A DNA stretch of 64,000 nt from the IMG/VR virus record IMGVR_UViG_3300044213_000107, positions 62,001-126,000 of that record; one strand, 5' to 3'. The notes below the pieces were generated by a model that did not search any database, had not been told where the DNA came from, and saw only the letters and a program-made list of their open reading frames with translations. Positions within the stretch are counted from its first letter, which is position 1. Every line of letters starts with the position of its first letter. Both the position numbers and the translations under genes were made by a program. Positions 7,832 to 48,690 of the stretch are shown piece after piece.

Positions 7832-8102
7832 TGCCGGCCTCTTTTAAGATATCAAATACACTACCAATTTCAAACTCAACGGTGTTATCGTCGATTACTT
7901 GAATTTTTTTGTGTGTAAAAAAACTTCTCATATACATTTCTAAAAATTCCGCAACAGTCATTTCTGCAGTTTGAAAAAATTCAGAATTGAGTTTTTTATT
8001 TGTTGCAACCAAATAGTAGTAATTATCTCTGTGGTCCAAAGAAAATTCTATGGCCAAAGGCCGAAACTTTTGGTTTAATTGATCAACAAACTCAAAATCC
8101 AT
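7821..8102 (-). CDS. Hypothetical protein
   Basis: Overlaps both neighbours within the operon. Confidence 0.55.
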   Translation of the reverse strand: MDFEFVDQLNQKFRPLAIEFSLDHRDNYYYLVATNKKLNSEFFQTAEMTVAEFLEMYMRSFFTHKKIQVIDDNTVEFEIGSVFDILKEAGSDE

Positions 8103-9120
8103 TTTTTATTCCGTATTCATATAATTCAAAACTGGCCAGGTTCTTGGCCTTGCTTTCGCACATGATATCAAACTGATCCCAAAAACTCAATGCCCACTGA
8201 TTCACTGGGCGATTCCAATAAAAGTTACTGTGTGCTCGTAGTTTTGCCTTTTTATAGCCTTCTGTGAGCAATTGTGCATGATCGGGCATTGTATCCGCAC
8301 AGTGATCAACTAAGACATCTTCTCGACTAACACTATAATGCATAGTAGGGCGTACGCCACGCCAACTATCAACCACTCGCTTAACGCTATCGCTATTTGG
8401 ATCAATGTAAACCCCTTCACGTATCCAATGATGATGTACATCAAGCACAATAGGAACAATATCGCTAATGGATAAGCAATCGTCGAGTCCATGTGTCATC
8501 TCCTCGTTTTCGATGGTGATTGTATTGCGGGCTTCAGGCGACAGTTTTGGATATGCCAACCTAATGCCGTTGGGGCCTTGACGGCCTGCGATGTGTACAT
8601 TGATTTTGAAGTCTTGGAACCGTTGTCCAAAACCCATCCAACGGGCCATGTCAACATGATATTCAAACTCCTCTATACTTCTGCGGACAATATCTGGGTT
8701 GTCACTAGCCAAGACAGTAAACTGCCCAGGGTGCATACTACAGCGAACACTCCGCAAGCGAGCCAGATCGCCGATGGTCGCAAAGTGTTTTGCACAGTAT
8801 TCACGAACGTCAGGCCGACGCCAAAAATACTGATATTCAGCATGAGTATACATAGGGAGTACGTCACTACTAAGCCGTACCATACGAAGGGATTCATCTA
8901 AGTTACCTACTCTTTCTACAAGTTTACGAACAGATTCGATATTGCCAGTCATCAAGTCCCAGAGTTTTTGCTCAGCGACTTCTCGAGTTTGGCGATTAAG
9001 CCAAGCCACAGTTGTAGTACCAGTGTTAAATTCTTTGGCGGTATCTGTTTGACGAATACCGTTGATTTGACTGGGACCGTCAATCCATTTACAGCAAAAC
9101 CCCATACGTTTAATGGTCAT
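8092..9120 (-). CDS. uvsE: UV damage endonuclease UvsE/UVDE
   Basis: RLSSD, SMHPGQFTVL, TIENEE and VLDVHHHW motifs. Confidence 0.92.
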   Translation of the reverse strand: MTIKRMGFCCKWIDGPSQINGIRQTDTAKEFNTGTTTVAWLNRQTREVAEQKLWDLMTGNIESVRKLVERVGNLDESLRMVRLSSDVLPMYTHAEYQYFWRRPDVREYCAKHFATIGDLARLRSVRCSMHPGQFTVLASDNPDIVRRSIEEFEYHVDMARWMGFGQRFQDFKINVHIAGRQGPNGIRLAYPKLSPEARNTITIENEEMTHGLDDCLSISDIVPIVLDVHHHWIREGVYIDPNSDSVKRVVDSWRGVRPTMHYSVSREDVLVDHCADTMPDHAQLLTEGYKKAKLRAHSNFYWNRPVNQWALSFWDQFDIMCESKAKNLASFELYEYGIKNGF

Positions 9121-9157
9121 AGTGTTATTATACTACAAAAACTTGAATTTTTTACAC

Positions 9158-10330
9158 TTATGTAAAAAGCATCCCACATAAATTTTCCATAATATTACCA
9201 GAATTTTTTTGCTTAGAAACCATTTTTGATAATCCTGGTTTGTTTCTTTCGATCAATTTCATTGAAATACTACTATCAAGAATTTGTTTAATTAAAATAT
9301 CTGGCGGTAATCTCAATAATGTTTTAAAAATTTCGATATCTCTCAACGGAGTCCATGTTAGTGTATTCCCAAGATGCCAATGCTGAAAATCATTTATATT
9401 AATATTACACAATTCCAACATCATTCTTCTATTAGACCAATTTGGATTTATTTTTCGTGTTTCGAATATTTTATAGTTTTCTGGTTTGTTAAAATATGTA
9501 TGTTGCATATAAGATATATTTTTAGGATCATTTAATAAATCAACCATAGAAATTTTATAATGTTTAAGAAACAAATCTACAGTCAAAGGACTACGCATCA
9601 TAAATTCGTCCCCGGGTGTGCCCGAAGTTATAATACATGGAGTAGTCCAATGATGAATTTGTTTATAGCCCCAATTATTTTTTAAAATTTCATATGAGTT
9701 TAACATCCAAAATTTATCATATTCAAAATGGCTATAGTTGCATAATTCATAATTATCTGTAAATCTTTGAAGATAACTATAAACTAACATACTATCAACA
9801 CCGCCACTTAAAAACACTCGAATTGGTAATTTATTATGTTGTATAAAAGAACGTGTTCGATCAATTAAAATTTTTTCTATAATTTTTATAGCATCTTCTT
9901 CGCTTAGACTAGTTTCGTTAAACACTCCGATAATATTAAATGTAGATATGTATGTTTTTATATCAGAATCTATACTTATTAAATTATTGGCCCAGCACAC
10001 TTTATCGTATTTTTGCAAATTAGTAACTTCAACAAATTCATTTACATAAACAGGAAAACTTCTATATCTATCAGTTTTTAAATGTATTAACTTATTATAT
10101 GGATCATATACAATGGCGCAAAAATTACCTGTAAAACTAGGTCGATCTTGATTTATTATCATATCTAATACTTGATCTATATCATAAGAATCAAGATATC
10201 CTTTATAGATAACTATTTTGTTATCAATATTTTTTTTGTTCCATCCAGAGTCGACATTAATATATAAATTGCCAACATTGTATGATTGGATGAAATTATT
10301 TTTTGGGTCGTGTGAAATTGAAAAAAACAT
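9158..10330 (-). CDS. Asparagine synthase-like protein (N-type ATP pyrophosphatase), AT-rich
   Basis: FLSGGVDS PP-loop; N-terminal FTGNFCAIV...DRYRSFPV resembles an Ntn-like domain. Confidence 0.65.
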   Translation of the reverse strand: MFFSISHDPKNNFIQSYNVGNLYINVDSGWNKKNIDNKIVIYKGYLDSYDIDQVLDMIINQDRPSFTGNFCAIVYDPYNKLIHLKTDRYRSFPVYVNEFVEVTNLQKYDKVCWANNLISIDSDIKTYISTFNIIGVFNETSLSEEDAIKIIEKILIDRTRSFIQHNKLPIRVFLSGGVDSMLVYSYLQRFTDNYELCNYSHFEYDKFWMLNSYEILKNNWGYKQIHHWTTPCIITSGTPGDEFMMRSPLTVDLFLKHYKISMVDLLNDPKNISYMQHTYFNKPENYKIFETRKINPNWSNRRMMLELCNININDFQHWHLGNTLTWTPLRDIEIFKTLLRLPPDILIKQILDSSISMKLIERNKPGLSKMVSKQKNSGNIMENLCGMLFT

Positions 10331-11434
10331 TTAGGTAATATTTAAAACTTGTGCCAAATAAGGATCGTAGTCAAGGAGAGATTTTCTAATAGGACTAAAT
10401 TGTACAATGTATTCTCTTAACTTTTCTATAGATGATGGATCTTGATTTTTGCCAATAAGTTGATAATAGTGGTCAAACTTTGAGTTAGAATTTGCTATAT
10501 CAATTAAAGAACTATTTTGAGGCCATTGAATTAAAGACATAAAACTTGGATTATTTAATGTATAAATTTTTAAATTTAAATTTAAAGAATTACAATATGT
10601 ATCAAGTTTGTGCAAATCATTTATATTTAACACACTTAAGGTACAATGTACCTGTAGATAATCTACTGTAGATTTGTAAAATTTTATATTACGATCTATA
10701 TCGTTCCATACACTTCCGTATCGTAACCACTCCGATTTCCGCCCAACTGCATCTAGACTTATAAACACGCAAACATAATTCCATATATTTTTTTCAAATA
10801 ATGTAGAATTAATTTTAGTTCCGTTAGTATGAAATTCAATCCTTGTTCTTTTAGATAAATTTAATTTTACTAACATTGATAAAAAATCTAATACAGATGG
10901 ATTATAAATAGGTTCTCCGCCGATTAGTGTCAGTGTAACAATATCGTGATAATCATAACTTTTAAGTATATTCTTTTTAAGATCAGGCCAATTCTTATTG
11001 AATTCTTTATTCGGATCAGTAAATGACACTGGTAGTATACCGATTAATCGTTTATGTTGAGCAATAACAGAACTCGAAGATTCGCCGCAAGTCCAGCAGG
11101 CTAGATTGCATATATTTCCAAATTTTAAATTCCACCTACTAGGCCATAATCCAAAATTTTTGTTTATAATAACCTGATCGTCAACTGCAGTTCTAAAACT
11201 ACTACCACTAAAAGATTCTTGTATCTTACAGCTGGCACATTCGTTTAACCAAGTCTGATTGTATAAACTATTTTTAAATGCTAATAGTCGATCATCCGCC
11301 CACCATTCTTCAAATGATTGATCTTCTAAACTATTGATTGTTGGAGATGCACTACAACAATTTCTAAATTGTGTATTTAATCCTGAAAATGCTTCAACGA
11401 ATGGAACCACACAAAATGGTTTATTAAAACTCAT
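10331..11434 (-). CDS. Radical SAM protein with N-terminal SPASM/twitch-like Cys cluster
   Basis: CNLACWTC (CxxxCxxC), GGEP and TNGT motifs; N-terminal FCVVPF...NCC...CASC. Confidence 0.9.
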   Translation of the reverse strand: MSFNKPFCVVPFVEAFSGLNTQFRNCCSASPTINSLEDQSFEEWWADDRLLAFKNSLYNQTWLNECASCKIQESFSGSSFRTAVDDQVIINKNFGLWPSRWNLKFGNICNLACWTCGESSSSVIAQHKRLIGILPVSFTDPNKEFNKNWPDLKKNILKSYDYHDIVTLTLIGGEPIYNPSVLDFLSMLVKLNLSKRTRIEFHTNGTKINSTLFEKNIWNYVCVFISLDAVGRKSEWLRYGSVWNDIDRNIKFYKSTVDYLQVHCTLSVLNINDLHKLDTYCNSLNLNLKIYTLNNPSFMSLIQWPQNSSLIDIANSNSKFDHYYQLIGKNQDPSSIEKLREYIVQFSPIRKSLLDYDPYLAQVLNIT

Positions 11435-21988: not shown

Positions 21989-23308
21989 TTAGAGTTTTTC
22001 TCCAGGAACGAAGCCACGGAAATGTAAGAACCTCGGAAAGCGAAGACTATAAGTGCCATCTTGATTTTGTGTAACGGCATCGGCACGGACTTCAACAACA
22101 TTACCCACCATTGCCGCACGACTGGCCCAGTAATTGTCGCGGTCGGCATCACTAAACCCACTGCCGACATTAACCCGAATAGTTCTACCATCGTCTTCTC
22201 CTTCGCAGATTATAGCACCTAGTCGTCCCGCATTGCGACCTGTCCCTTCTTCTACTGCCACCACACTTAAACTAACTTCAATAAATGGTTTGAGTTTAAG
22301 CCATGCTACACTACGCTTGCATTCATAAACTGCCTCGGGATCCTTGATCATAATGCCTTCGTAGCCGCCAGCAACTGCCTGCGTATTAATCATTTTAAAT
22401 CTTTCTTGACCTTTGGCAGTATCAAGATCGACTAGTTCTTGGCCCACAACCGCAACATTTGGCATGTGTTCACGCAATGGGTTATACCATGCTATTAATC
22501 CACGACTGCGTTCTAATTGTGTTCGTGTGCTGCGACCTTGTTGAAATTCCTTGAGTGTCAGTGCATCAAATACATGTAACACCGCATCATTGGCCGCAAC
22601 ATCTGTTTTACGATGCACCTGTTTCATTAGGTCTTGGAAACTTGAACTCATAACTTCGCCATCAAGCACCACAGGTTCTGCAGCAAATAATACCGCATGT
22701 TTGGCTATTTGTTTTTTGATATGCTCAAAGTTTACCAACTCTTTACCATTGCGACTATACTGATCAACTTGTCCATTGGGATATACAACGGTGATAACAC
22801 GCACACCATCAAGTTTAACTTCAATTAATTTTTCGCCTGTGATCTTACTTTCGTGATTTGCACTATCGTACGCAAGTTGGCAAGCAAAAACCGGAATCAC
22901 ATATTCGGTGTTAATTTTTTCTACAGCTTTGTTAATTGTTTTTTCGCTTACACCGCATCGTAGATCTTTAATTAAAATACGACGATACCAACCATTCCAT
23001 TGTAGTTGGGTGGCTCGAGACATCATCATGTTAACTGCGGTAATAGCCGCATTGCCAGTCAATTTTCGTTCTGCTAGTTGTTGAGCAGTTTTCCAAAATG
23101 ATTCTGCAGGTAATCCTGCAGTTTTGGTTTCTTTTGTTTTTTCTGGTACTTGTTTAATGCCGTAGGTGATCAAAGAATCTAATGCGGCACGGGCACCACG
23201 GAAAAATTCTGCGTTACCTGCGGCTGCTTCACGAGCAACTACAGATTCTTTAAATAAACGACTATTGTCAGACTCTAATTCTGAAACAACTTCCCAAGGG
23301 TTAAGCAT
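21989..23308 (-). CDS. lig: ATP-dependent DNA ligase
   Basis: Motif I KLDGVR; LDGE, EGIMIKD and WLKLKP motifs; C-terminal OB fold with SLRFPRF. Confidence 0.95.
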   Translation of the reverse strand: MLNPWEVVSELESDNSRLFKESVVAREAAAGNAEFFRGARAALDSLITYGIKQVPEKTKETKTAGLPAESFWKTAQQLAERKLTGNAAITAVNMMMSRATQLQWNGWYRRILIKDLRCGVSEKTINKAVEKINTEYVIPVFACQLAYDSANHESKITGEKLIEVKLDGVRVITVVYPNGQVDQYSRNGKELVNFEHIKKQIAKHAVLFAAEPVVLDGEVMSSSFQDLMKQVHRKTDVAANDAVLHVFDALTLKEFQQGRSTRTQLERSRGLIAWYNPLREHMPNVAVVGQELVDLDTAKGQERFKMINTQAVAGGYEGIMIKDPEAVYECKRSVAWLKLKPFIEVSLSVVAVEEGTGRNAGRLGAIICEGEDDGRTIRVNVGSGFSDADRDNYWASRAAMVGNVVEVRADAVTQNQDGTYSLRFPRFLHFRGFVPGEKL

Positions 23309-25476: not shown

Positions 25477-26595
25477 TCAATTATCGCCCATTAATTCGTA
25501 TAGTTCTGGCAAGTACTCTCGCCAATCCATACCGTGATAATTTCGTGTATGTTCCATGTATCTGTAAAATTTTTTTCTACATTGTAGATCAAATGCACTA
25601 TTATCTATATATGCTTTTAAAAAATGTAAATCATTGTCATTTAAATAGCTAGATATTTTATCTTTTTCTTGTTCTGTTAAAATTGAATATGTTAAATATG
25701 GTGGATAACTCACAAAACCTATTTCATTAGTTAAAGAGATGCCAAGATTTTTCATATATTCGATATATTCTACTACACCAAATAAATTTAATATACTGTG
25801 TGTTGGATGAGATGCTAGATTAAATCCTTGAGATTTAAAATCAATTAAATTTAGATTGAATTTATTCCAGTCAGCACCTGTTCGTATAAATTCAAATTTT
25901 TTCTCAATTGCTTCAAAACTAACAACTAAATTAATTTTATTAAATTTTTTTAATATCGGAATATCTTTATAACTTACTGTTCCGTTTGTGTTAATATTTA
26001 AACAAGTATCGGGCCCTGCTGAATCTAATACCTTTTCTAAAAAAATACTTAACTTATTCATATTATACAACGGCTCTCCACCTATTATATTAACAAATTT
26101 TAAATTTTTAAAATCATCATCAGTGTAATCATAAACTGCAGATGGCCAAACATCTAAATTTTCAATTGACACACTAATGTCGTAATTATAAATTGTATTC
26201 GGTAATTTTAAAGCTTCGGGTATCCAACTACTGCTAGATGACGGGCGGCAATATCTACATTGGATATTACAATATCTTCCTGTATCAACAGTTAATTGCA
26301 TAAAATCTTGTACATTTGATTCTGTAGAATATAAATCTATGTAATTGGCTAAACTTAATCGTTTGCTGAAATTTTTCCCAGGGTGTAGAATTTCAGCATT
26401 ACGACATGTAGTACAATATTTTTCTGGCCATTCACCTTGGTCAAACGACTGTTTTATTTCATTGTAAACAGGACTTTGCAGCATTTTAGTGCGACTTGTT
26501 ATATTGGGTATGGGTTGAAAGCAGCACGGACCTTGGAATTGAGCATCGTATGCGTGTTCGAAATACCAGCAACGTATAGGTTCTTTTTGATTCAT
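25477..26595 (-). CDS. Radical SAM protein with N-terminal twitch/SPASM-like cluster, AT-rich
   Basis: CNIQCRYC, GGEPL and TNGT motifs; N-terminal C...PCC...CTTC. Confidence 0.9.
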   Translation of the reverse strand: MNQKEPIRCWYFEHAYDAQFQGPCCFQPIPNITSRTKMLQSPVYNEIKQSFDQGEWPEKYCTTCRNAEILHPGKNFSKRLSLANYIDLYSTESNVQDFMQLTVDTGRYCNIQCRYCRPSSSSSWIPEALKLPNTIYNYDISVSIENLDVWPSAVYDYTDDDFKNLKFVNIIGGEPLYNMNKLSIFLEKVLDSAGPDTCLNINTNGTVSYKDIPILKKFNKINLVVSFEAIEKKFEFIRTGADWNKFNLNLIDFKSQGFNLASHPTHSILNLFGVVEYIEYMKNLGISLTNEIGFVSYPPYLTYSILTEQEKDKISSYLNDNDLHFLKAYIDNSAFDLQCRKKFYRYMEHTRNYHGMDWREYLPELYELMGDN

Positions 26596-27593: not shown

Positions 27594-28034
27594 TTAATTA
27601 TAACCGAGAACTACATTATCAGGCCAAGGTGCAGGGTCTGGTATTGCACATGGACCTTCTGCTGGCTCAGTTCCATAATCTGCCGGCAGAACAATTTCAA
27701 GATACTCCATATCTGGACTATAATCAAAAAGATAGTGTACTATCCCGGGTCGTTGATGTACACAGTCTCCGGCTTCTACCAAATGTATTTTATCTTCATA
27801 CATGAATTTAGCCCAACCTTTGAGCATGTATACAATCTGGAATTCTGCTATGTGTATGTGCCAGCCGGTGCCTCCTGAACTTTCTGGAGGTAAATTAGCT
27901 CGTGTAACATGAGCTAATACAGCTCCGTTGGTAGCATCTTTTACACCTAGGTCTTTGTAGACAAAAAAATCTCTCAAACCACCACCAACAAATGGTAGTT
28001 GATTTCCTTTTACATGACTAAATTTTGTTTGCAT
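27594..28034 (-). CDS. Cupin domain protein
   Basis: GWHIH...FQIVYMLKGW...GDCVHQRPGIVH. Confidence 0.9.
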   Translation of the reverse strand: MQTKFSHVKGNQLPFVGGGLRDFFVYKDLGVKDATNGAVLAHVTRANLPPESSGGTGWHIHIAEFQIVYMLKGWAKFMYEDKIHLVEAGDCVHQRPGIVHYLFDYSPDMEYLEIVLPADYGTEPAEGPCAIPDPAPWPDNVVLGYN

Positions 28035-28037
28035 GGT

Positions 28038-28928
28038 TTATCCTTTGTTTATGGCCTGCCATTTTTCAGCGATATGATCAACAAAGTCTTTTATGGTATT
28101 AAGGCCATGTTGTCGCATGTAGGTAATAATCTTAACTGCAGTTTCGCGTTCTTGACCAGCATCGGGTTTACGAGCATTTGACATGTCGTTGTTTAATGAT
28201 TCTATAGCCGATTGTCGATCATAGGTATAATTTAAATTATAACGCATTTGATCGGCTTCTCGGCTTAAACGCTCAGGATCGTTCAGCACCATTAACTCAA
28301 CCCAGGACTGCATGTATCCGCGTTTTCTTTTTGGTCTGTGCCATGCTTTGTCCCGAGCGCCAGTTAGCGTACCAACATCGCCAGGATGTCTAGTATCCAT
28401 GTTTTGCCAAGCGGCTTTGTTAGTGTAAAAATAAGTTTTAATTCCTTGGGTCTTTGCTGAAATCAACAATTCTCGGGTCATAGCATTAACGTGATTATCT
28501 ATTAGAGACTTTTTTGTGTCCGGCACTAATAATACATGCACAGACTTTACACCACCAATTGGTATAGCGGGTTCACTGCTAAAAACACGGTCTTCGGCTT
28601 CGTGACTTCTGTGATGTGATTGTGCAGGATCTCTGTTGCCCCAATAGTCCAAAGGTTGACTACGATATCTTTGATTAAACCAGGTGCCATCGAGTTCAAA
28701 TAACACTCCTTGAGTCCTGCCGGCATTTTCATGATAGCCACCTCTGCGTGTTCGTGTAGTACTTAAAAAGTAAGGTTTACCTTGTGGCATGTATTGTTGC
28801 TCAACACTGCCTAACGCACTACTTAATTCAAACTGTCCTGATTGTAGAATCTTTAATGCCGTGGGAATATTGGTATAATGAAATACAATAGGACTTAGAC
28901 TTTCTAATAGAAATTCCGTGGCTCGCAT
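28038..28928 (-). CDS. Putative virion-internal protein with ADP-ribosyltransferase-like motifs
   Basis: MRATEFLLES leader; FHYT, LSTTR and EAEDR motifs (inference). Confidence 0.45.
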   Translation of the reverse strand: MRATEFLLESLSPIVFHYTNIPTALKILQSGQFELSSALGSVEQQYMPQGKPYFLSTTRTRRGGYHENAGRTQGVLFELDGTWFNQRYRSQPLDYWGNRDPAQSHHRSHEAEDRVFSSEPAIPIGGVKSVHVLLVPDTKKSLIDNHVNAMTRELLISAKTQGIKTYFYTNKAAWQNMDTRHPGDVGTLTGARDKAWHRPKRKRGYMQSWVELMVLNDPERLSREADQMRYNLNYTYDRQSAIESLNNDMSNARKPDAGQERETAVKIITYMRQHGLNTIKDFVDHIAEKWQAINKG

Positions 28929-30562
28929 TATTTTTTACGACCTGCTTTCATGTTAGCACACCAATGATACATTCGGCCACGTTCGCCACCTGCACGTTTG
29001 GCTCGGGCTCGCAAATCTGTAACAGAACCTTGACAACTGGCGCCAGCACGAGCTACACGACCTGGACGACTTTTTCCTTTGCGTTTACCATCAGCAAAGT
29101 TTTCCGCCACAGCTTGCTTTAGAAACTGTTCACCAGAGCCAGTCACATACCAGCGGTCATCGTCATTTACAATATAACCAGCATCTGCTAAACTATCCAA
29201 GGTACGGTCAAACATTTCAGTTCTAGACTCATCTTCTACATAGTCCATGCCCAACATTGCTGCAGTATAGATACCTTTTAGTATAAGTCTTTGTCCTAAT
29301 CCTTGACCTCTAAACTCAGGATCAAGCTCAGTAATAGTCCTTCCGGTATCGGCATCATATTGAAATACGCCTGCTGATTTACCATTCACTAACATTTCAA
29401 CAGAAAATTTATTTTTACCTTTTTGTTGTTGATATGTAATGTTGTTAGAGCCTTCCGCCACACCTCGACCTAAATCACCCAATCCAAAATCTGTTGGTGG
29501 CACATACTTACCATCGTGTTGTTTAATATGGTCTGCTAAGTCTGCTAAATCTCTAAACCCACGATCTTGTAATTCTTGATCCACATCAACTAATTCTTTA
29601 CCACCCCACTTGTATAGATCGAGTTCCATACGACCTATATCCTGATGCTTTTTTAAACCACTGATAACATATCCTACAATACTATCAAAGTTTACATCTT
29701 GACGGTCTTGATCCAAGTCGCTCACGACGCCTTCCGCCACACCTTGCTTAACAAACTGAACATTTAATTTAGCATTTTTCCACAATGGATTTTTAGGATC
29801 CATTCGTTGTTGTAGCAACCATATAGCGGATACTCTATGTGCTCCATCTTCAAACTTACTATTCAGTACCAATATAGGAGGTAACTTTGATAAACTTTCT
29901 GGATGATCCTTTAAGTAAGCGGCATACTCTATAACCTTTTTAGTGACGCCCCAGCTGTAATCTTTAGCGTCCCAATCATCTACCACATTGTTATAATAAG
30001 GTAATCCTGGTACTGAATCTATAAGTTGTTTTGCAGTCATCTGCCTGGTTTGTATTTTAGCGTCAGAGCCAAACTGTTTTGGTGCACCTGAACTTGGACC
30101 AGGTTGTGGAATATCTTCCGCCACATCTTGATTACGATACAAATCAAACTCTACTTGATCGCCTTGATCATGTGCTCTTACACCATATCCCAAATTGGTT
30201 GCGTAACGGTCAACTAATTTCTTATAAAGTTTAGCACGACTCTCGGGATTTTGCCCGGGTTCAACTTCTTTTGTGGCTGAAAAATTTATGTTATACGGTT
30301 GTTCTTTTTTTACAAACTGTTGAATAGCAAACAACACCGTGGCAAACACTCGTTGTGCATCACCAGCACCAGTGACATCTATACTGTGATCTCTGGTAAA
30401 ACTTACAAGTACTTCGTAAGGGGTTGAATATTCAAATGATATACTCAATGGTGAACCATCTGGCAAGCGAGCAAACGCATCATTGTCCCCGTGATCACCT
30501 CGGCTCCACGTTAATGGGTAAGGTTGGTCAAAAGATTCTAAAATAATTTCTTTAATACGCAT
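28928..30562 (-). CDS. Modular putative virion polyprotein (ParB/Srx-like and GNAT-like modules) with VAE linkers
   Basis: MRIKEIILES leader; four VAE linkers; LPPILV...EDGAHR; PEFRGQGLG; basic C-terminal module NFADGKRKGKSRPG...HWCANMK. Confidence 0.65.
   Translation of the reverse strand: MRIKEIILESFDQPYPLTWSRGDHGDNDAFARLPDGSPLSISFEYSTPYEVLVSFTRDHSIDVTGAGDAQRVFATVLFAIQQFVKKEQPYNINFSATKEVEPGQNPESRAKLYKKLVDRYATNLGYGVRAHDQGDQVEFDLYRNQDVAEDIPQPGPSSGAPKQFGSDAKIQTRQMTAKQLIDSVPGLPYYNNVVDDWDAKDYSWGVTKKVIEYAAYLKDHPESLSKLPPILVLNSKFEDGAHRVSAIWLLQQRMDPKNPLWKNAKLNVQFVKQGVAEGVVSDLDQDRQDVNFDSIVGYVISGLKKHQDIGRMELDLYKWGGKELVDVDQELQDRGFRDLADLADHIKQHDGKYVPPTDFGLGDLGRGVAEGSNNITYQQQKGKNKFSVEMLVNGKSAGVFQYDADTGRTITELDPEFRGQGLGQRLILKGIYTAAMLGMDYVEDESRTEMFDRTLDSLADAGYIVNDDDRWYVTGSGEQFLKQAVAENFADGKRKGKSRPGRVARAGASCQGSVTDLRARAKRAGGERGRMYHWCANMKAGRKK
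29102..30127 (-). repeat. Four copies of GTGGCGGAA (V-A-E) at module junctions
   Basis: TTCCGCCAC on the plus strand begins at 29102, 29453, 29732 and 30116. Confidence 0.9.
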
Positions 30563-30605
30563 CTAAATATTTATCGGACTTTTGGCTAAAAAGAAGTAAA
30601 GTAAA

Positions 30606-31319
30606 TTAGCGATTGCGACGGGGTTTAGCCAGACCTAATATTTCGAGTATTCTTATGTACATCCAGCCAATATCAAACTCCCACCATTTACGACTAAATT
30701 TTGGATTTGATCCATCGCCATGATGCGAATTATGGAGCTCTTCGCCGCCAATCCATATACCGATAGGAATCAAATTTCTCGATGTGTCGTTTGTATCATA
30801 ATTTCTATAACCCCACCAGTGTGCCAGTCCGTTAATAACACCCGCTGCCCAAAAGGGTATCCAAATCATTTGTATTCCCCATACTACGAATCCCGCGGAA
30901 CCAAAAAACAACAAGTCCATGACCAGCATCAAAAGAATTCCATAAAGATTATATGGAGTATATAAATGTCGTTCGATCCAGTCGTTAGGAGTACCAATGC
31001 CTAACTTTAATACTTCTGGATCTCGTTTAGCCTTTACATAATAAAATGCACCGCCAAATAATATATGCCAAATTCCATAGATTTTAGGACTATGTGGATC
31101 TGCCGGTGTATCGCTGGCCTGATGATGTCGGCGATGTACTGCTACCCATTCCCGTGTGGTCATACCAGTTGTAAGCCACAGCCAAAATCTCATCACATGT
31201 GATATTACTGGATGAAATGTAACTGCACGATGTGCTTGGCTACGATGTAGGTATAGAGTTACACACATGATTGTGATGTGTGTCATTATTAGTGTGGCTA
31301 TGATTTCTTGTACCGGCAT
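30606..31319 (-). CDS. desA: Membrane fatty acid (acyl-CoA/lipid) desaturase
   Basis: His boxes HRSQAH, HRRHH and HNSHH. Confidence 0.93.
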   Translation of the reverse strand: MPVQEIIATLIMTHITIMCVTLYLHRSQAHRAVTFHPVISHVMRFWLWLTTGMTTREWVAVHRRHHQASDTPADPHSPKIYGIWHILFGGAFYYVKAKRDPEVLKLGIGTPNDWIERHLYTPYNLYGILLMLVMDLLFFGSAGFVVWGIQMIWIPFWAAGVINGLAHWWGYRNYDTNDTSRNLIPIGIWIGGEELHNSHHGDGSNPKFSRKWWEFDIGWMYIRILEILGLAKPRRNR

Positions 31320-31343
31320 CTAATATTTAGCGGTAACTGCGGT

Positions 31344-31439
31344 TTATTTTCTGTGGTTTTGGTACCAGTCCCATGCCCAACACACTGCTAAAATTACAAC
31401 AAAGCCTAATACAATTGGGGTTACGTCATCGTTTAACAT
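31344..31439 (-). CDS. 31-aa single-pass membrane peptide
   Basis: MLNDDVTPIVLGFVVILAVCWAWDWYQNHRK with an AAGGAG RBS. Confidence 0.55.
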   Translation of the reverse strand: MLNDDVTPIVLGFVVILAVCWAWDWYQNHRK

Positions 31440-31450
31440 ATCAACTCCTT

Positions 31451-31762
31451 TTAATCATCTATAAATTTTATTACACAAGTTTGTTCAGTTTCTTGCAAAA
31501 ATTGTTGAAAATATGATTCCCATACTGGATCATTTGGCGGTCTAAACCCTTCGGGAATAGTATTGCTCCATACATAATCACGACGCGAACTTGTTTGATC
31601 TATAACCATATATCCTTGATCAATCATTGATTGCCGTATACCTTTTTTGCGGCGATTGGCTGCATGCCAATCTTCTTGAGTCGCAGAGTCTTTGGTTGCT
31701 ATCCAATCTTCGATGTTGATTCGAGCGCCATCTGCACGTTCTATTACATGTTGTTCTCTCAT
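31451..31762 (-). CDS. Hypothetical protein
   Basis: Follows a TAAATA late-type motif. Confidence 0.6.
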   Translation of the reverse strand: MREQHVIERADGARINIEDWIATKDSATQEDWHAANRRKKGIRQSMIDQGYMVIDQTSSRRDYVWSNTIPEGFRPPNDPVWESYFQQFLQETEQTCVIKFIDD

Positions 31763-31781
31763 AGAAATATTTAGCCGTAGA

Positions 31782-31802
31782 AAAAGGGCCGAAGCCCTTT
31801 TC
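31782..31802. terminator. Intrinsic terminator
   Basis: AAAAGGGC-CGAA-GCCCTTTT. Confidence 0.85.
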
Positions 31803-31822
31803 GCACACTTGCAAAAAACCGT

Positions 31823-32155
31823 TTATGCTGCGTCTTTGCTTTCTGCACGCTCCTTGAGAGCGGTAAGGCTAGGTTTAGCTTTGGCAGTTGCCTTAACTGT
31901 GGCTACTGCGTTATATTTTGCATCTGCAGCATCAATAGCCTCGCGATACTCTGTGTTGTTATACAACTCAGTTGTTTTAAGATGTGCAACCAATGCAGCC
32001 TTGGTCATTGCAGACGGCAACTCAATTAAGTTGATATCTGTATCAGTTTTAGCAAGAATTTTGACACGGGTCATGTCGTTGGCAAAACGAACTTTGTACT
32101 GGCCTTTAGTTTTACTAACGCCACCAACGGAAAAAAGTTTATTGTCTGTAGACAT
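31823..32155 (-). CDS. Hypothetical protein with K/A-rich tail, possibly nucleic-acid binding
   Basis: GVSKTKGQYKVRFANDMTRVKIL...KATAKAKPS; AGGAG RBS. Confidence 0.65.
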   Translation of the reverse strand: MSTDNKLFSVGGVSKTKGQYKVRFANDMTRVKILAKTDTDINLIELPSAMTKAALVAHLKTTELYNNTEYREAIDAADAKYNAVATVKATAKAKPSLTALKERAESKDAA

Positions 32156-32278
32156 TGAAATACTCCTAGAAGTTAAATTGAAAAAACATATGTATACTAT
32201 TCATTTAGTATACCATAATTATATTGCCTTTTGATAGTGGCGTCAACCACATTTTGGCGGCAATAATACCAAAATTCT

Positions 32279-32404
32279 TCATTCTGCGGCTGCTTGAGCA
32301 GCGTGTTGTACTTGCGCAACACCTTTTTCGGCGATGTTAACAACGCCATGAACACCAATGGTGGCAATAGCAATACCCACAATGATACCTATGACGAAAT
32401 TCAT
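32279..32404 (-). CDS. 41-aa membrane peptide
   Basis: MNFVIGIIVGIAIATIGVHGVVNIAEKGVAQVQHAAQAAAE; ATGA overlap. Confidence 0.55.
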   Translation of the reverse strand: MNFVIGIIVGIAIATIGVHGVVNIAEKGVAQVQHAAQAAAE

Positions 32405-32568
32405 TTGTGCTTCTCCTGTGATTGTTCTGGATACAAAGGAACTTCGGATTTTGGTTCAATCCATTTACCTGCGGCACTAATATCTTTTCCTGCGCCTTGT
32501 AAGGTGCCCGAAACGGTATTACATGCCACGAGATTTAATAACAATAAAATACCAAATAATGCTTTCAT
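32401..32568 (-). CDS. Entericidin A/B-like small lipoprotein (55 aa, not in the ORF track)
   Basis: MKALFGILLLLNLVA-CNTVSGTLQGAGKDI: lipobox plus CNT..G.GKDI. Confidence 0.65.
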   Translation of the reverse strand: MKALFGILLLLNLVACNTVSGTLQGAGKDISAAGKWIEPKSEVPLYPEQSQEKHK

Positions 32569-32801
32569 ACATCTGCTCCTGGGTTGAAAAATCTAAACAT
32601 GTCTTCCATTTCCGCATCTGTGATTTCATCATCTAAAGGACGATCATGTTGTGCCTCAATGGCTTCGGCTTCGTCATAGGCCATCTCAAAGTTTCGAGCC
32701 TTGAGCGGAATACGTTCTAAATTAATATAGTGATTGCCTTCCAAGGTAACACGAACCTGCATGGAAAAGTTATCACCATCTTTTATGATAGAATACTCCA
32801 T
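32565..32801 (-). CDS. Hypothetical acidic protein
   Basis: AAGGAG RBS; coupled to the next gene. Confidence 0.55.
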   Translation of the reverse strand: MEYSIIKDGDNFSMQVRVTLEGNHYINLERIPLKARNFEMAYDEAEAIEAQHDRPLDDEITDAEMEDMFRFFNPGADV

Positions 32802-32965
32802 GATATTACTCCTTCTCTGTTGTCTAACTCAACTGCACAAAATTCTTGCATAATCTCATCTCTAACACTTTTGCTCGGTGATTCTACAAGAGACTGATAC
32901 AACTGCTCAAGTTCTGAGGTTGTTAAACTTGAGATTTCAGCGTGTATTTCTTTAAGTTTACCCAT
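32783..32965 (-). CDS. Hypothetical early protein
   Basis: Promoter TTGACG-17-TATAAT at 32997-33025. Confidence 0.55.
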   Translation of the reverse strand: MGKLKEIHAEISSLTTSELEQLYQSLVESPSKSVRDEIMQEFCAVELDNREGVISWSILS

Positions 32966-33021
32966 TTTTAACTCTGTTTTGCGTTAACATGTGTTTATTA
33001 TACTAGATTTTGAATAACCCG

Positions 33022-33183
33022 TCAATCCAAAGGGTTGTTTTTTGTGTGTTTTTTGTGGCGTCGATACAACTTTTTGCTATTTTCCACACGGTTTTTGAAC
33101 GGCAGATTTGCGTCAAAAAGTGCACGATGTGCACGAATTTTCTGTGGTATTTTTACAACAACGGTGATTTTGGTGCGTTTCAT
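33022..33183 (-). CDS. Small basic protein, distantly ArfA-like
   Basis: Start MKRTKI after TTGACA-17-TATAAT (33193-33221); LFDANLPFKNRVENSKKLYRRHKKH. Confidence 0.45.
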   Translation of the reverse strand: MKRTKITVVVKIPQKIRAHRALFDANLPFKNRVENSKKLYRRHKKHTKNNPLD

Positions 33184-33232
33184 AATAGTTGTATTATAAC
33201 ACCAAACGAATTCCCTGTCAAGAGCCAGGGTT

Positions 33233-35449
33233 TTATGCCATAACTGGTACAACTTCTGCTAGACCCGAATACTGAGTTCTCCGCATCCATTCTGCGGCAA
33301 CTCTGTTAGCATCGTGCTGACTATTGCCTATTCCACCAAATCTATATAACTCTTGGCCATTACCATTAAGTATCTTCCACGAACCAGTAAATGCACCTGA
33401 TGCTTGTTGTTGTCGAACATCTTGTGTTGATCCAGGTACACTCAACTCTCGACCAGTTTCAGAATCGCGAATACCAAACTGTGCACCGCTCAAATTGTTT
33501 GCTTGATAGCGTCTTAGTTGATCTAATGCCGCAGCATCATTTGATGAAAGGATCGATGCTACTCCTGGATTATTCTCCGACCTACGGAATATCTCATACC
33601 TTCTGGGAGCGGTTGCAGGAAGCTCTGGGAATAGATCAATGGTACCAGGGTCTGCATGTTGTCCTACGGCCTGCGGCTCACCTGCCGTGGCACGCCAAGG
33701 TGCTGGTGCAGTATCTCCGTTTTTGATATCGCCTGGTTGTCCACGGTGCTTTGTGGGATCGTGGCTGACCAATACTTGGAAATCAGGCCGGTATTCTCTG
33801 ACATATTGATCTTGTACTATTCCTGCATCTTTGCCATTGGCGGCATTAAAACGATATAGAACTTCAACATCGTATGGCTGATTAACATCACCAATTCGGC
33901 GATGTTGTCTAAACAAAATCCATTCACCTTCGGGATTACTACGACGACCGCCCACTACAATGCCTTCGCCGGGCTTGCGTAACTGGCGTTCCAGTTGTGC
34001 TTGTTTGATAAAACTACGCAATGCAGCCTTGGGCATTTCGCCGGCTACATATCGTGCAAAATACAGTATAGTATCTTTATTTTCTCCTTTGGGTGCTAGG
34101 AGTTTATACAGTTTCTTTAGATATTCTTCACGATGTAGTTCAGGTTTGACTGCAGCATCCAGGGCCACAACAAATCGCAACATGGTGTTTTCAATTTGAT
34201 CAAAGTTAACGTCCAACCAATCGCCACCAGCACTACGAAACTCAATGTAATTGCTTTTAACATTGATACTGGTGTATTTGTCCGTGGATGGAGCATGTAT
34301 GGCCCGGCTGGCAAATTCATCTAAGTGATTACGCATTTTGTCTAACAAACCTTGAGCTTCGTCGGGGTTTCCTTGCACACGGTTCTTTACTTTTTCTATG
34401 GCAGATTTACAATAATGATTGCTAGTACGACCGAACTTTTCTAGCACATATTGGTCGCCTAGCAATACTGCAAGTTTAACATAATCCAATTTGTAGCGTT
34501 CAAAGTCTGGAACACTGACATTGATGTGTAGACCGGTACTGTCGTTGGTGTAGCATCCATAACTTTTTGCCCAGGCTTTGACCTTTTTAAGTTGGTCAAT
34601 CATTTCATCAACTGGCATTGGGGGACTAACAAACTCCAGGCCCGATTCTGAAGATTCATCATCGGGACTTAGACTGCCATCAGGTTCAACCACATAGTGC
34701 CCGGGTTCGCGACGTCCACCGTGATAATTACGGCTGGCATTCACCGGCATGCCTATTGCTTTGCTAAAACTATTGGCTACTGCATCAATGTCTGCTTCGG
34801 CGTCATCATCGTTGTAACTGTTGGCCCAATAAGGCCACATCAAACCAAAATGGTTTTCAATGTCGGTCATGTAAGGATAGTTTTGCTGAAGCCAATTGCC
34901 CGAATCGTCAAAGAGATCTTGTTGTTGTTCTTCACGAAATTCATCATAAGCGTCATGTTTGGTACTGTCATTGTCTTCCCAGAGATGATTGGCATAGTCT
35001 AAGATATCGTTTTTACCTGGTGTGTAATCTTCGTCGTCGGCCTTGCCTAACCAGTCTTTGATTTGAGTTTCATCAATATTGTTGGCTACCCATTCCACAA
35101 AATAGTCAAACCCATCACGGTCCCACCGATTGTCGATTTGTTCATCGCAGTCTTCATAAAATTTTTGTTCCAATTCTTCTATCGCCCGCTGAACAGTTCG
35201 GGTACTATTGTAATCACCGTCATTGAAAAATTCGTATATGTCACTAAAACTGCGAGTTCTTGTGTCTTGGTCGTAGTCGGGTTCCTGTTCATTATCACCG
35301 TTGCTGCTTTTGTCAACTGGAACAATCATTTCAAACTCCATGCCAGCCCGGGCATCGATTTTCTTTGCCTGACTACGAAGGCTGGTGGGGCTCATGGCAA
35401 TTTCTGATAACTGCTGTTCTGATAATGGTTTAATGTCTGTGTAACGCAT
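33233..35449 (-). CDS. Putative amidoligase (COOH-NH2 ligase type 2) domain protein, probably virion-packaged
   Basis: GMEFEM, GLEFVSPP, STGLHINVS and IEFR motifs; acidic insert; MRYTDIKPLSE leader. Confidence 0.75.
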   Translation of the reverse strand: MRYTDIKPLSEQQLSEIAMSPTSLRSQAKKIDARAGMEFEMIVPVDKSSNGDNEQEPDYDQDTRTRSFSDIYEFFNDGDYNSTRTVQRAIEELEQKFYEDCDEQIDNRWDRDGFDYFVEWVANNIDETQIKDWLGKADDEDYTPGKNDILDYANHLWEDNDSTKHDAYDEFREEQQQDLFDDSGNWLQQNYPYMTDIENHFGLMWPYWANSYNDDDAEADIDAVANSFSKAIGMPVNASRNYHGGRREPGHYVVEPDGSLSPDDESSESGLEFVSPPMPVDEMIDQLKKVKAWAKSYGCYTNDSTGLHINVSVPDFERYKLDYVKLAVLLGDQYVLEKFGRTSNHYCKSAIEKVKNRVQGNPDEAQGLLDKMRNHLDEFASRAIHAPSTDKYTSINVKSNYIEFRSAGGDWLDVNFDQIENTMLRFVVALDAAVKPELHREEYLKKLYKLLAPKGENKDTILYFARYVAGEMPKAALRSFIKQAQLERQLRKPGEGIVVGGRRSNPEGEWILFRQHRRIGDVNQPYDVEVLYRFNAANGKDAGIVQDQYVREYRPDFQVLVSHDPTKHRGQPGDIKNGDTAPAPWRATAGEPQAVGQHADPGTIDLFPELPATAPRRYEIFRRSENNPGVASILSSNDAAALDQLRRYQANNLSGAQFGIRDSETGRELSVPGSTQDVRQQQASGAFTGSWKILNGNGQELYRFGGIGNSQHDANRVAAEWMRRTQYSGLAEVVPVMA

Positions 35450-46962: not shown

Positions 46963-47471
46963 CCTGTAATCTGTAATGTATATCTATCTTCTATGCCAAT
47001 ATTAGCTGCTGCATGTGGTAAGTCATATGCCCATTCAACAATATCACCTGCCGACCAATTAACTATGCCTTCGCCATTGACTTCACTGTAATGTCCCGGT
47101 TGCCAGTCTTCTAAAAAAACTACAGCACGACGAATGCGATGTTCCTGTCCCTGCAAGTTAAATATTTTAACATACTTAACATATAAATCAGAATGAGTTG
47201 GTAATATTGTACCAGTCTTCATTCGATAGTAACTGGTACCAATATCTTTCCAACTATATTTTGTAAACAAGTCAACAAATCTATAGTTCCACACAGGTTG
47301 TGTGCTACGCATATCGCACATTTCTCCTGTAAACTGTCCAGTATAGCCTTGCTCCCTCCATCGATTAACACTCGCTTGGTCATTAAAAGATTCTCGATTG
47401 TAGTCTAATGTTTTAAAATCATCGGTCCAGAATGGTGTTATTTTAAATTTACTGTAAGCGGGTGTTGCCAT
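46953..47471 (-). CDS. Cupin/2OG-Fe(II) oxygenase-like protein
   Basis: LPTHSD (HxD) ... HAAAN ... RYTLQITG; likely start MATPAY. Confidence 0.65.
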   Translation of the reverse strand: MATPAYSKFKITPFWTDDFKTLDYNRESFNDQASVNRWREQGYTGQFTGEMCDMRSTQPVWNYRFVDLFTKYSWKDIGTSYYRMKTGTILPTHSDLYVKYVKIFNLQGQEHRIRRAVVFLEDWQPGHYSEVNGEGIVNWSAGDIVEWAYDLPHAAANIGIEDRYTLQITGWV

Positions 47472-48690
47472 AATGAATAACCTTAACTCCTTGAATGTTA
47501 GATGAATATGTGCGCCACGGATCAACAATAACGCTGCCTTCTGAGATTTCGCAGTACATACCTTGTTGTTCGACAACTCCAGCATAGCCATAAGTGATTT
47601 GTTTATTATGAGCTAACAAAACAACACCCTTTACTGGCTTGTCTGGCGCCGGATCGCCTGTTAATGGATCAATGTATGTAGGTTTGTAACCAAATTCTTG
47701 ACAATAATATCCAACTAATAAACTATAACTACCTTCTGTGTATGCTACATCGGGTTTGTATGCTTTACCGTGAATATAAATCGGTAGGTCGTATAACTTT
47801 GCTTGTTCTACCAATGACTGTGCCATTAATCGTGCTTGTTTTTCTCTGGCATGCATGATAGCATCAAACAAATCATAACCTAAATCAAGTTCTTGGGCGA
47901 GATATCTTAATGCAATATTATCGCGCGGATGACACGGACCTGCATCTCCAAGTCCTGCAGTCATATACTTAGGCCCCATGATCCGCATATTAGATTTAGC
48001 AAGTGCTGCAGTCACAACATCAACATTAATGTTTCCTTGTCGAATAGCAACGTCTTGAATCATGTTAGCTAGACCAATTTTGGCACTAATGAATGTATTA
48101 TAAAATACCTTGATACATTCAGCTTCGTCCCAGGTTCCAACTTCGTAGCGCGGATCATTTTCCATTATAGTTTGATAAAATTCAATTAGTTCCTGTGCAT
48201 CACCGGTTACGGATCCATCTTCGGTTCCAATAATAACCATTTCGGGATTGACCATATCCCACTCTACTGTGCCCATGGCAATCAAATATGGGTTATATAC
48301 AAATCGTGCGTTGGTGATATGATTTCGCAATTGTTTTCTTGTAGTACCAGGCAACACAGTTGAAATCAAAACAATCAATTGATCTGCAACAGCATATTGA
48401 TTAATATCTTGCAAAACTTGATTAACTAATGTATAATCGAAGTCTTTATTAGGTAAATGTGTAATTGGCTGTTCGCCACCATAAACAGGGTCGTGTGGTG
48501 TTTGGACTGCAATAAAGACTATGTCTTTGCCAACTACTGCTTCTTTTAAGGTATTAGCTATTTTGATTTTGTTGCTGGTGCGTGGATAAATATCATACCC
48601 AGTAACATCGTGTTTGCTAGCCATAACTTCGGCGCAGGCCAAACCTAATTTTCCAATTCCTATAAACCCTACGTTTTTTCTATTACTCAT
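47449..48690 (-). CDS. UDP-glucose/GDP-mannose dehydrogenase family protein
   Basis: GIGKLG, AVQTP, ISTV.PGT, KVFYNTF, GPCHPRD and YKP motifs. Confidence 0.92.
   Translation of the reverse strand: MSNRKNVGFIGIGKLGLACAEVMASKHDVTGYDIYPRTSNKIKIANTLKEAVVGKDIVFIAVQTPHDPVYGGEQPITHLPNKDFDYTLVNQVLQDINQYAVADQLIVLISTVLPGTTRKQLRNHITNARFVYNPYLIAMGTVEWDMVNPEMVIIGTEDGSVTGDAQELIEFYQTIMENDPRYEVGTWDEAECIKVFYNTFISAKIGLANMIQDVAIRQGNINVDVVTAALAKSNMRIMGPKYMTAGLGDAGPCHPRDNIALRYLAQELDLGYDLFDAIMHAREKQARLMAQSLVEQAKLYDLPIYIHGKAYKPDVAYTEGSYSLLVGYYCQEFGYKPTYIDPLTGDPAPDKPVKGVVLLAHNKQITYGYAGVVEQQGMYCEISEGSVIVDPWRTYSSNIQGVKVIHYGNTRLQ

Follow-up and report, generated by a model that had tools for sequence, protein, structure and literature searches.

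A 64,000-nucleotide stretch of DNA, hereafter the window (bases 62001-126000 of the 260,723-bp IMG/VR record IMGVR_UViG_3300044213_000107, which is 74% complete with 38.5% GC), carries on its minus strand a single open reading frame (ORF) in which five unrelated modules are joined by four linkers of the sequence V-A-E. As judged from its sequence, the source is an uncultured jumbo phage of fresh water whose head-assembly core is of the T4 type, and every public run in which the gene was found is a freshwater metagenome, with at least four studies represented. It is probable that the product is a polyprotein targeted to the head and cut by the prohead protease into modules for injection, and the linker DNA may be kept identical by module-shuffling recombination. 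The gene is divided as follows, with coordinates given as window positions.

28928-30562, minus strand: whole polyprotein ORF, 544 residues, five modules, with the TAA stop at 28928-30
30536-30562, minus strand: propeptide MRIKEIILE, similar to a capsid-targeting sequence (CTS), with a predicted cut after Glu9
30116-30535, minus strand: module M1, residues 10-149, DUF6934-like, modelled with a GNAT-like fold; ends in linker 1 (QDVAE, 30116-30124)
29732-30115, minus strand: module M2, residues 150-277 (128 residues), ParB/Srx-like, with a DGAHR motif; ends in linker 2 (KQGVAE, 29732-29740)
29453-29731, minus strand: module M3, residues 278-370; ends in linker 3 (GRGVAE, 29453-29461)
29102-29452, minus strand: module M4, residues 371-487, GNAT-like, with a RGQGLGQRL motif; ends in linker 4 (KQAVAE, 29102-29110)
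28931-29101, minus strand: module M5, residues 488-544 (57 residues), basic and C-terminal, beginning NFADGK

The nine-nucleotide string GTGGCGGAA occurs four times in the window, always within this minus-strand ORF and read in frame as V-A-E, with the peptide contexts QDVAED, QGVAEG, RGVAEG and QAVAEN. The chance expectation is 0.18 copies, and four copies were reached in 0 of 100 shuffles. Across the genome, GTG makes up 13.6% of Val codons, GCG 6.9% of Ala codons and GAA 82.6% of Glu codons, shares from which the 9-mer is expected in approximately 0.8% of VAE tripeptides. It is used by 8 of the 30 VAE present in the ORFs of the genome, all eight in linker-like contexts of the form G/D/A-VAE-G/D/N. 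Nine copies are found genome-wide, all on the gene strand and in frame, and four of them lie outside the window in three adjacent genes (genome 28232-33130).

Conservation extends beyond nine nucleotides. The consensus is AAG CAA GGT GTG GCG GAA GGC (K-Q-G-V-A-E-G), which constitutes a nearly fixed element of 15-18 nucleotides. In 80 loci gathered by protein similarity, the gene strand has 65 copies of the 9-mer against a single copy on the opposite strand, with four occurrences of the reversed control. Moreover, GTGGCGGAA is used at 43 of 61 distinct G-VAE-[GDNAES] sites against approximately 1.2% predicted by codon usage, and most of the other sites are one base off. The exact 18-mer CAAGGTGTGGCGGAAGGC is present in at least 119 IMG/VR stretches, whereas the synonym written with the commonest Val and Ala codons is present in 10. 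The 153 linker sites belong to loci of 34-52% GC and fall into 105 upstream and 112 downstream flank clusters, and the sequences flanking the linker are therefore mostly unrelated. It can be observed that QGVAE junctions nearly always have the canonical letters, while AVAE, SVAE, DVAE, TVAE and PVAE junctions use ordinary codons, so that cleavage sites as a class follow no codon rule. What the comparison points to is one particular string of 15-18 nucleotides that was copied and kept. An initial annotation of this DNA had described four VAE linkers with an identical 9-mer in an AT-rich genome, which agrees well with the counts above; its further statement that VAE codons are fixed is correct for the four sites here, but the fixed codons belong to this single element in its QGVAE form and not to VAE junctions in general. 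A literature search returned no paper mentioning GVAEG or the 9-mer in a phage context, and no DNA-level conserved linker is described in the searchable literature.

Fixed codons could alternatively serve RNA or translation: rare codons might stall the ribosome, the linker might provide a Shine-Dalgarno-like site that separates domains, or the RNA might be processed there. GTG and GCG are indeed rare in this genome, and pairing of the linker with the anti-Shine-Dalgarno sequence (-7.2 kcal/mol) ranks within the top 7% for coding 21-mers. However, a synonym composed of common codons pairs almost equally (-6.5), by which Shine-Dalgarno-like pausing was ruled out as the cause of the linker codons. 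Any rare codon would be enough for a pause, but what is conserved is one exact string; codons are ordinary at the non-canonical VAE junctions, and the 25 tRNAs of the phage do not single out the codons of the linker. A function of this type is considered unlikely.

The protein level displays a different constraint. In T4, phiKZ, 201phi2-1 and SPN3US alike, the prohead protease cleaves on the C-terminal side of Glu within an X-x-E motif (PMC5694885). Three modules were located in 120 homologues via their conserved first residues, and the residues preceding them were read. The P1 residue was Glu before M5 in 92 of 92 cases, before M2 in 63 of 66 and before M1 in 57 of 57; before M5, P3 was V, L, M or I in 85 of 92 and P2 was variable. 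A second, independent set was obtained by searching an M5 profile against 1.84 billion proteins, which gave 1,485 representatives (1,012 at E <= 1e-10), and the junction counts cover 143 new ones among the best 150 of these 1,485 matches. Here, P1 was Glu in 143 of 143, P3 was V, L, I or M in 123 of 143, P2 was spread over eight or more residues, and M5 was C-terminal in 138 of 143. Since otherwise different linkers agree in having Glu at P1 and a hydrophobic P3, most commonly Val, the constraint on the junction is hydrophobic-x-Glu, and this rule of T4-type prohead proteases also ends the N-terminal peptide.

Motifs resembling twin-arginine translocation (Tat) signals are situated 1-6 residues past junctions in P0112 (residues 321-339, internal), L022:9170-10693 (internal), L078:3944-4339 (after the CTS) and L082. 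The Pfam TAT_signal cut-off is passed only in L078 (28.8 bits), and the two internal motifs score below it. An internal Tat signal would be functional only after cleavage, which provides a hint that the junctions are cut.

These observations bear on the alternative that the ORF encodes an ordinary uncleaved multidomain enzyme, in which VAE forms flexible spacers whose identity stems from recent internal duplication. Multidomain phage proteins are common, cleavage is a prediction from comparison, and modelling of the complex gave it no support. On the other hand, junctions of differing sequence in which P1 is Glu and P3 hydrophobic but P2 free bear the signature of a protease site and not of a spacer, the N-terminal decapeptide ends by the same rule, single modules are found right behind that decapeptide, and the Tat-like signals lie just past junctions. 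Furthermore, the linker appears in more than 100 unrelated contexts across many phages, and internal duplication therefore cannot explain its identity. We regard an uncleaved enzyme as quite unlikely.

A protease of the appropriate type is predicted in the same genome, in a row with genes for a scaffold-like and a capsid protein.

genome 259482-260117: prohead protease, Peptidase_S77 (T4 gp21-type), 212 residues, profile match of 87 bits
between the protease and capsid genes: coiled-coil scaffold-like protein, 366 residues
same genome, in the row with the protease and scaffold genes: Gp23-family major capsid protein, 330 bits

Cultured jumbo phages with a similar capsid protein, at 65-69% identity, are Vibrio phage 2.275.O, Pseudomonas phage PA5oct, Sinorhizobium phage Phosso and Erwinia phage pEa_SNUABM_19. 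In these four cultured capsid relatives the 9-mer is not enriched and starts of the MRAxEF type are absent, and no cultured model was found.

The N-terminus of the polyprotein would provide the link to the head. In T4, internal proteins of great diversity are recruited to the scaffold core by a CTS of 10-20 residues, which the prohead protease afterwards removes (PMC3012670, PMC5694885). The polyprotein start, MRIKEIILE-S, resembles this sequence, and the strict pattern M-[RK]-x-x-[ED]-phi-phi-x-E, in which phi is a hydrophobic residue, is found in 7 ORFs of the genome and in 72 of the 132 second-set proteins that begin with Met. Most of the 120 best homologues start with MRAxEF(I/V)xE. Within the 80 related loci, 100 distinct CTS-like starts were counted on the gene strand and 0 on the opposite strand, and a relaxed CTS motif is carried by 35 of 86 ORFs with a canonical linker versus 90 of 934 other ORFs of the same loci (Fisher p = 1e-12). 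The CTS of T4 has the sequence MKTYQEFIAE, to which MKTYQFITE, the start of L022 and L027, is close. The CTS can also be fused straight to M5 (MRASEFITE/NFADG in L019 and L024) or to M2 (MRASEFVVAE/GVPQPG in P0117), and M1 is found behind the CTS as well as behind internal linkers. As read from these sequences, the plan of the wider family appears to be CTS, cargo, hydrophobic-x-Glu and M5, of which the gene in the window would be a multi-cargo elaboration. The initial annotation had proposed both head packaging and prohead-protease cleavage at the linkers. Comparison lends support to the former through the T4-CTS-like decapeptide that starts this ORF and most relatives, a feature it had overlooked, and to the latter through Peptidase_S77 in the same genome and junctions of relatives that keep Glu at P1 and V, L, I or M at P3.

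The polyprotein might instead be cleaved without being packaged, if the prohead protease or another enzyme cut it in the cytoplasm to supply equal amounts of auxiliary enzymes and the N-terminus served translation or export. Because many cargo domains of the relatives look metabolic (NUDIX, dCMP deaminase, NT5C, pterin dehydratase, Cu/Zn superoxide dismutase) and the genes lie away from head genes, this explanation retains some weight; the decapeptide of L078 could likewise be the n-region of an ordinary Tat signal. Against it stand the close match of the N-terminus to the T4 CTS (MKTYQFITE in L022 and L027) and the result that no peptidase family, including the zincin-like MPTase, was found in the polyprotein or 10 relatives at E <= 0.001-0.1, which leaves no second protease domain there. 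Moreover, the activity of gp21-type proteases in T4 is confined to assembled proheads, and the genes for T4 internal proteins are likewise scattered around the genome. Cleavage without packaging is therefore held to be fairly unlikely.

In the proposed mechanism, the decapeptide MRIKEIILE would act like the T4 CTS in directing the protein to the prohead's scaffold core. The phage's own gp21-type protease would subsequently cut after Glu in hydrophobic-x-Glu, removing the targeting peptide and splitting the chain at all four VAE linkers, which would release five pieces: the GNAT-fold module, the ParB/Srx-like module, M3, the GNAT module and the basic peptide of 57 residues. The released pieces would be retained in the head and delivered to the host along with the DNA. 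Taken separately, this cleavage and packaging part is judged probable from the sequence comparisons. With respect to the linker DNA, an exchange at the linker would always be in frame and would always recreate the cleavage site.

Modules in the family are rearranged. A total of 738 proteins match the polyprotein at E <= 1e-5, and relatives, with up to 8 modules in one ORF, join these modules to NUDIX, dCMP deaminase, nucleotidyltransferase, GH19 plus LysM, true ParB_N and ASCH domains. When related ORFs were split at the linker, the 128-residue M2 cassette was found in 10 different architectures. In blastn comparison with related loci, matches to M2 begin at nucleotides 429-444 of the gene and end at 831-835, with linkers at 439-447 and 823-831, and matches to M5 begin at 1433-1459, with a linker at 1453-1461. 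The DNA of L022 and L027 is 97-98% identical except for a 131-residue module inserted directly 5' of GGTGTGGCGGAA. Contigs from four freshwater runs were also aligned to the gene, and 17 of the 22 loose ends listed lie within approximately 13 nucleotides of linkers 2, 3 or 4. Contig X4 record 24 shares only module M4 (approximately 90% identity), with unrelated flanks on both sides, while contig X1 record 3 shares only two linkers, with a different insert between them. The initial annotation had viewed the linker as a module-swapping site, and the comparison of orthologs is favorable to this view: modules vary and VAE codons are fixed, which is the opposite of fixed modules with variable codons.

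All these data are metagenomic, and the Logan contigs do break at linkers, so the short repeat might have produced chimeric contigs and the shuffling might be an assembly artefact. The repeat of 15-21 nucleotides is, however, shorter than the k-mers that decide final contigs, and every ORF is open across its junctions. The same architectures are found again in separate samples. The pairs L011/L012, L045/L046, L064/L070 and L074/L078, each from different metagenomes, are 99.8-100% identical. Contig X3 record 17 covers all four linkers with six differences, and chimeric assembly is therefore less likely. We consider an artefact extremely improbable.

Repeated exchange at the linker, in which the element is carried along and homogenised, would explain the DNA identity most economically, and our confidence in it falls slightly short of even. 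A stronger version is possible but doubtful: the 18-nucleotide linker would be a dedicated in-frame site for domain shuffling, acting both as a recombination hotspot (through a phage nuclease or T4-type recombination) and as the code for the protease site, and some released modules with Tat signals would be re-exported to the host periplasm. Such a site would be the protein-level counterpart of an integron attachment site, and exchange between co-infecting phages would then yield a new working set of packaged effectors.

Several points weigh against the proposal of a head-targeted, cleaved and shuffled polyprotein. Packaging, cleavage and injection are all predictions from sequence. The T4 rule is (L/I)-x-E, and Val at P3 is an extension of it. 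Complex prediction for the protease with a 40-residue linker peptide scored 0.00, a value that neither supports nor opposes cleavage. The neighbours of the polyprotein gene are auxiliary or metabolic (cupin, hydrolase, desaturase-like, amidoligase), and head genes are not adjacent. Regarding the exchange, the indel between L022 and L027 has the canonical linker on one side only, with microhomology of 3-4 nucleotides on the other, and only one of 3 recent indel events among near-identical loci is located at a linker. In addition, selection removing recombinants broken inside modules would also put breakpoints at linkers; the breakpoints are therefore no proof that the 18 nucleotides promote exchange.

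As for the modules themselves, M1 has a weak match to DUF6934 and matches PHROG families of unknown function. Its AlphaFold2 model (mean predicted local distance difference test, pLDDT, 82.3) gave top Foldseek matches in the Protein Data Bank (PDB) that are almost all GNATs, at E values of only 6e-4 to 3e-3 and template modelling (TM) scores of 0.42-0.47, so the modelled fold resembles that of GNATs. The initial annotation had listed this module simply as an N-terminal domain, to which the GNAT-like fold can now be added. INPHARED phages match only M1, in KVP40-like Vibrio phages. In Vibrio phage KVP40 (L091), the M1 paralogues KVP40.0115 and KVP40.0116 are adjacent, both with starts of the MKFSEYQ type, although the annotated start of KVP40.0116 is 11 codons upstream of this motif; the two could give an experimental handle on M1.

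For M2, no Pfam match was obtained among 35 members. Alignment with the true ParB_N modules of relatives by hhalign gave 94.7% probability (E = 6e-8) over 50 columns via PPILV...DGxHR, aided in part by the shared linker tail, and structural neighbours in the Atlas were ParB_N, DndB and GmrSD_N (TM 0.5-0.58). The AlphaFold2 model, built from a shallow alignment, was too poor for a fold search (pLDDT 48.6). The earlier assignment of this module as ParB/Srx-like thus has moderate support. M3 is rare, with three homologues and no family assigned. M4 matches GNAT profiles below the cut-offs (Acetyltransf_CG, 17.9 bits; Acetyltransf_7, 15 bits) and contains the acetyl-CoA motif RGQGLG (Q/R-x-x-G-x-G/A), while homologous modules in relatives match PF00583 and PF13508; by sequence M4 would be GNAT-like. 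M5, with 57 residues, is very basic and displays 91% mean column identity. Profile searches with M5 found no known family, giving only a spurious match to the OAR motif, and in the ESM Atlas M5 ends viral clusters of NUDIX, NT5C, pterin dehydratase, ART-PolyVal, GNAT and Cu/Zn superoxide dismutase proteins. A PDB search with the whole 544-residue polyprotein was empty.

The translation and expression of the gene can be considered together with two adjacent features.

28038-28928, minus strand: next tandem ORF, 296 residues, with its own CTS-like start MRATEFLLE (followed by S), without linker
30568-30574, minus strand: ATAAATA motif resembling a T4 late promoter, a function suggested by likeness; ends 5 nucleotides before the ATG, with no Shine-Dalgarno sequence between

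The ORF at 28038-28928 belongs to no known family, and a PDB search with it was empty. The stop codon of the polyprotein overlaps the ATG of this ORF by one base (TAATG, window 28926-28930), and the same stop/start overlap follows M5 in related loci. These overlaps suggest that tandem arrays of such genes are translationally coupled. ATAAATA has 58 copies on the gene strand of the genome versus 17 on the opposite strand. Before start codons it falls into two position classes, one at -11 to -14 without a Shine-Dalgarno sequence and the other at -23 to -34 with GGAG between, and the former class suggests leaderless mRNAs. The association of ATAAATA at -12 with CTS-like starts was not significant (p = 0.056).

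Among the genes nearby, window 30606-31319 (minus strand) encodes a 237-residue membrane protein with the histidine boxes HRRHH and HNSHH, which resembles a fatty-acid desaturase and has no Pfam match at E <= 0.1. Auxiliary genes on the same strand include those for a UvdE UV endonuclease, two radical-SAM proteins, an ATP-dependent DNA ligase, a 738-residue amidoligase_2 protein and UDP-glucose dehydrogenase (jointly, window 8092-11434, 21989-23308, 25477-26595, 33233-35449 and 47449-48690). Genes for an amidoligase and GH19 likewise adjoin the homologue in a relative of 368 kb (L225). Outside the window, the 25 tRNA genes are clustered on the gene strand (genome 195743-204218). A second group of genes with head-targeting-like starts is also located outside the window, at genome 24365-34492, with loci L001-L004 spanning 27827-34303. 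Its members start with MYIKDIIES (630 residues), MFISDLFEKE (992 residues, two canonical linkers), MDMRKLLES (474 residues, one linker), MKTTDFIVE (165 residues, one linker) and MFIAEMFIKE (358 residues, nucleotidyltransferase-like, GRFQPFHRGH), and a Dps-like ORF sits inside the group.

Precedents exist for CTS-tagged internal proteins, for polyvalent proteins and for prohead proteases specific to Glu, and the present system has features of each. With the T4 internal proteins (IPI-III, Alt) it shares an N-terminal peptide of approximately 10 residues ending in hydrophobic-x-Glu, a protease of the gp21 family in the genome, diverse and fast-evolving cargo behind a conserved tag, and the proposed sequence of packaging, cleavage and injection, which is a prediction here. 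T4 has one cargo per gene and no repeated internal linkers, whereas up to 8 modules per ORF are present here, along with a second conserved tag, the basic C-terminal M5 behind its own cleavage site, and Val as the commonest P3 residue. Polyvalent proteins of phages and conjugative elements are mosaic proteins of many domains that are presumed to be delivered by the virion (PMC5512222). They likewise combine ParB-like, acetyltransferase, NUDIX, ART and lysozyme-type domains, and processing into units has been proposed for them; the five modules here lie within the 2-15 unrelated effector-type domains, mosaic among relatives, of that type. For classical polyvalent proteins, processing is ascribed to a zincin-like MPTase domain of their own, in contrast to the prohead protease acting at a uniform linker proposed here. 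The ejection and inner-body proteins of the phiKZ-like and SPN3US giant phages are likewise head proteins; a T4-related protease cleaves them behind Glu, at (S/A/G)-x-E, and many proteins packaged in these phages enter the host. They differ in losing long propeptides, in not being chains of unrelated enzymes, in having no uniform linker and in belonging to another phage lineage.

At the DNA level, PeSLs mediate modular gene shuffling in T4-like phages (PMC2839356, PMC4122927). Like the linker, they are short conserved DNA motifs with many copies per genome, common to several phages and associated with insertions, deletions and replacements. PeSLs are intergenic, consist of a sigma-70-like promoter and a stem-loop terminator and shuffle whole genes, whereas the linker comprises 15-18 nucleotides, lies in frame inside ORFs, encodes a predicted cleavage site and would shuffle domains. 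By analogy of possible working, and not of membership, the linker would be an intragenic counterpart of PeSLs. What appears to be new is a polyprotein with a standard linker, a common basic tail and, above all, a linker whose very nucleotides are conserved over more than 100 unrelated junctions.

If the proposal is correct, a large clade of uncultured jumbo phages packs its toolkit for the first minute of infection as strings of interchangeable modules, built with three standard parts: an N-terminal address tag, a linker that marks where to cut and a common basic tail. The polyprotein strategy is otherwise typical of RNA viruses, and the ideas of T4 internal proteins and polyvalent proteins would be extended to a true polyprotein strategy in phages. 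It would also provide a concrete DNA-level mechanism for domain shuffling in phages, testable since the site is a defined 18-mer. The tag, linker and protease could also offer a natural scheme by which phage heads might be filled with several cargo proteins. Furthermore, if the Tat motifs are real, modules that are cleaved and injected could be exported to the periplasm of the new host.

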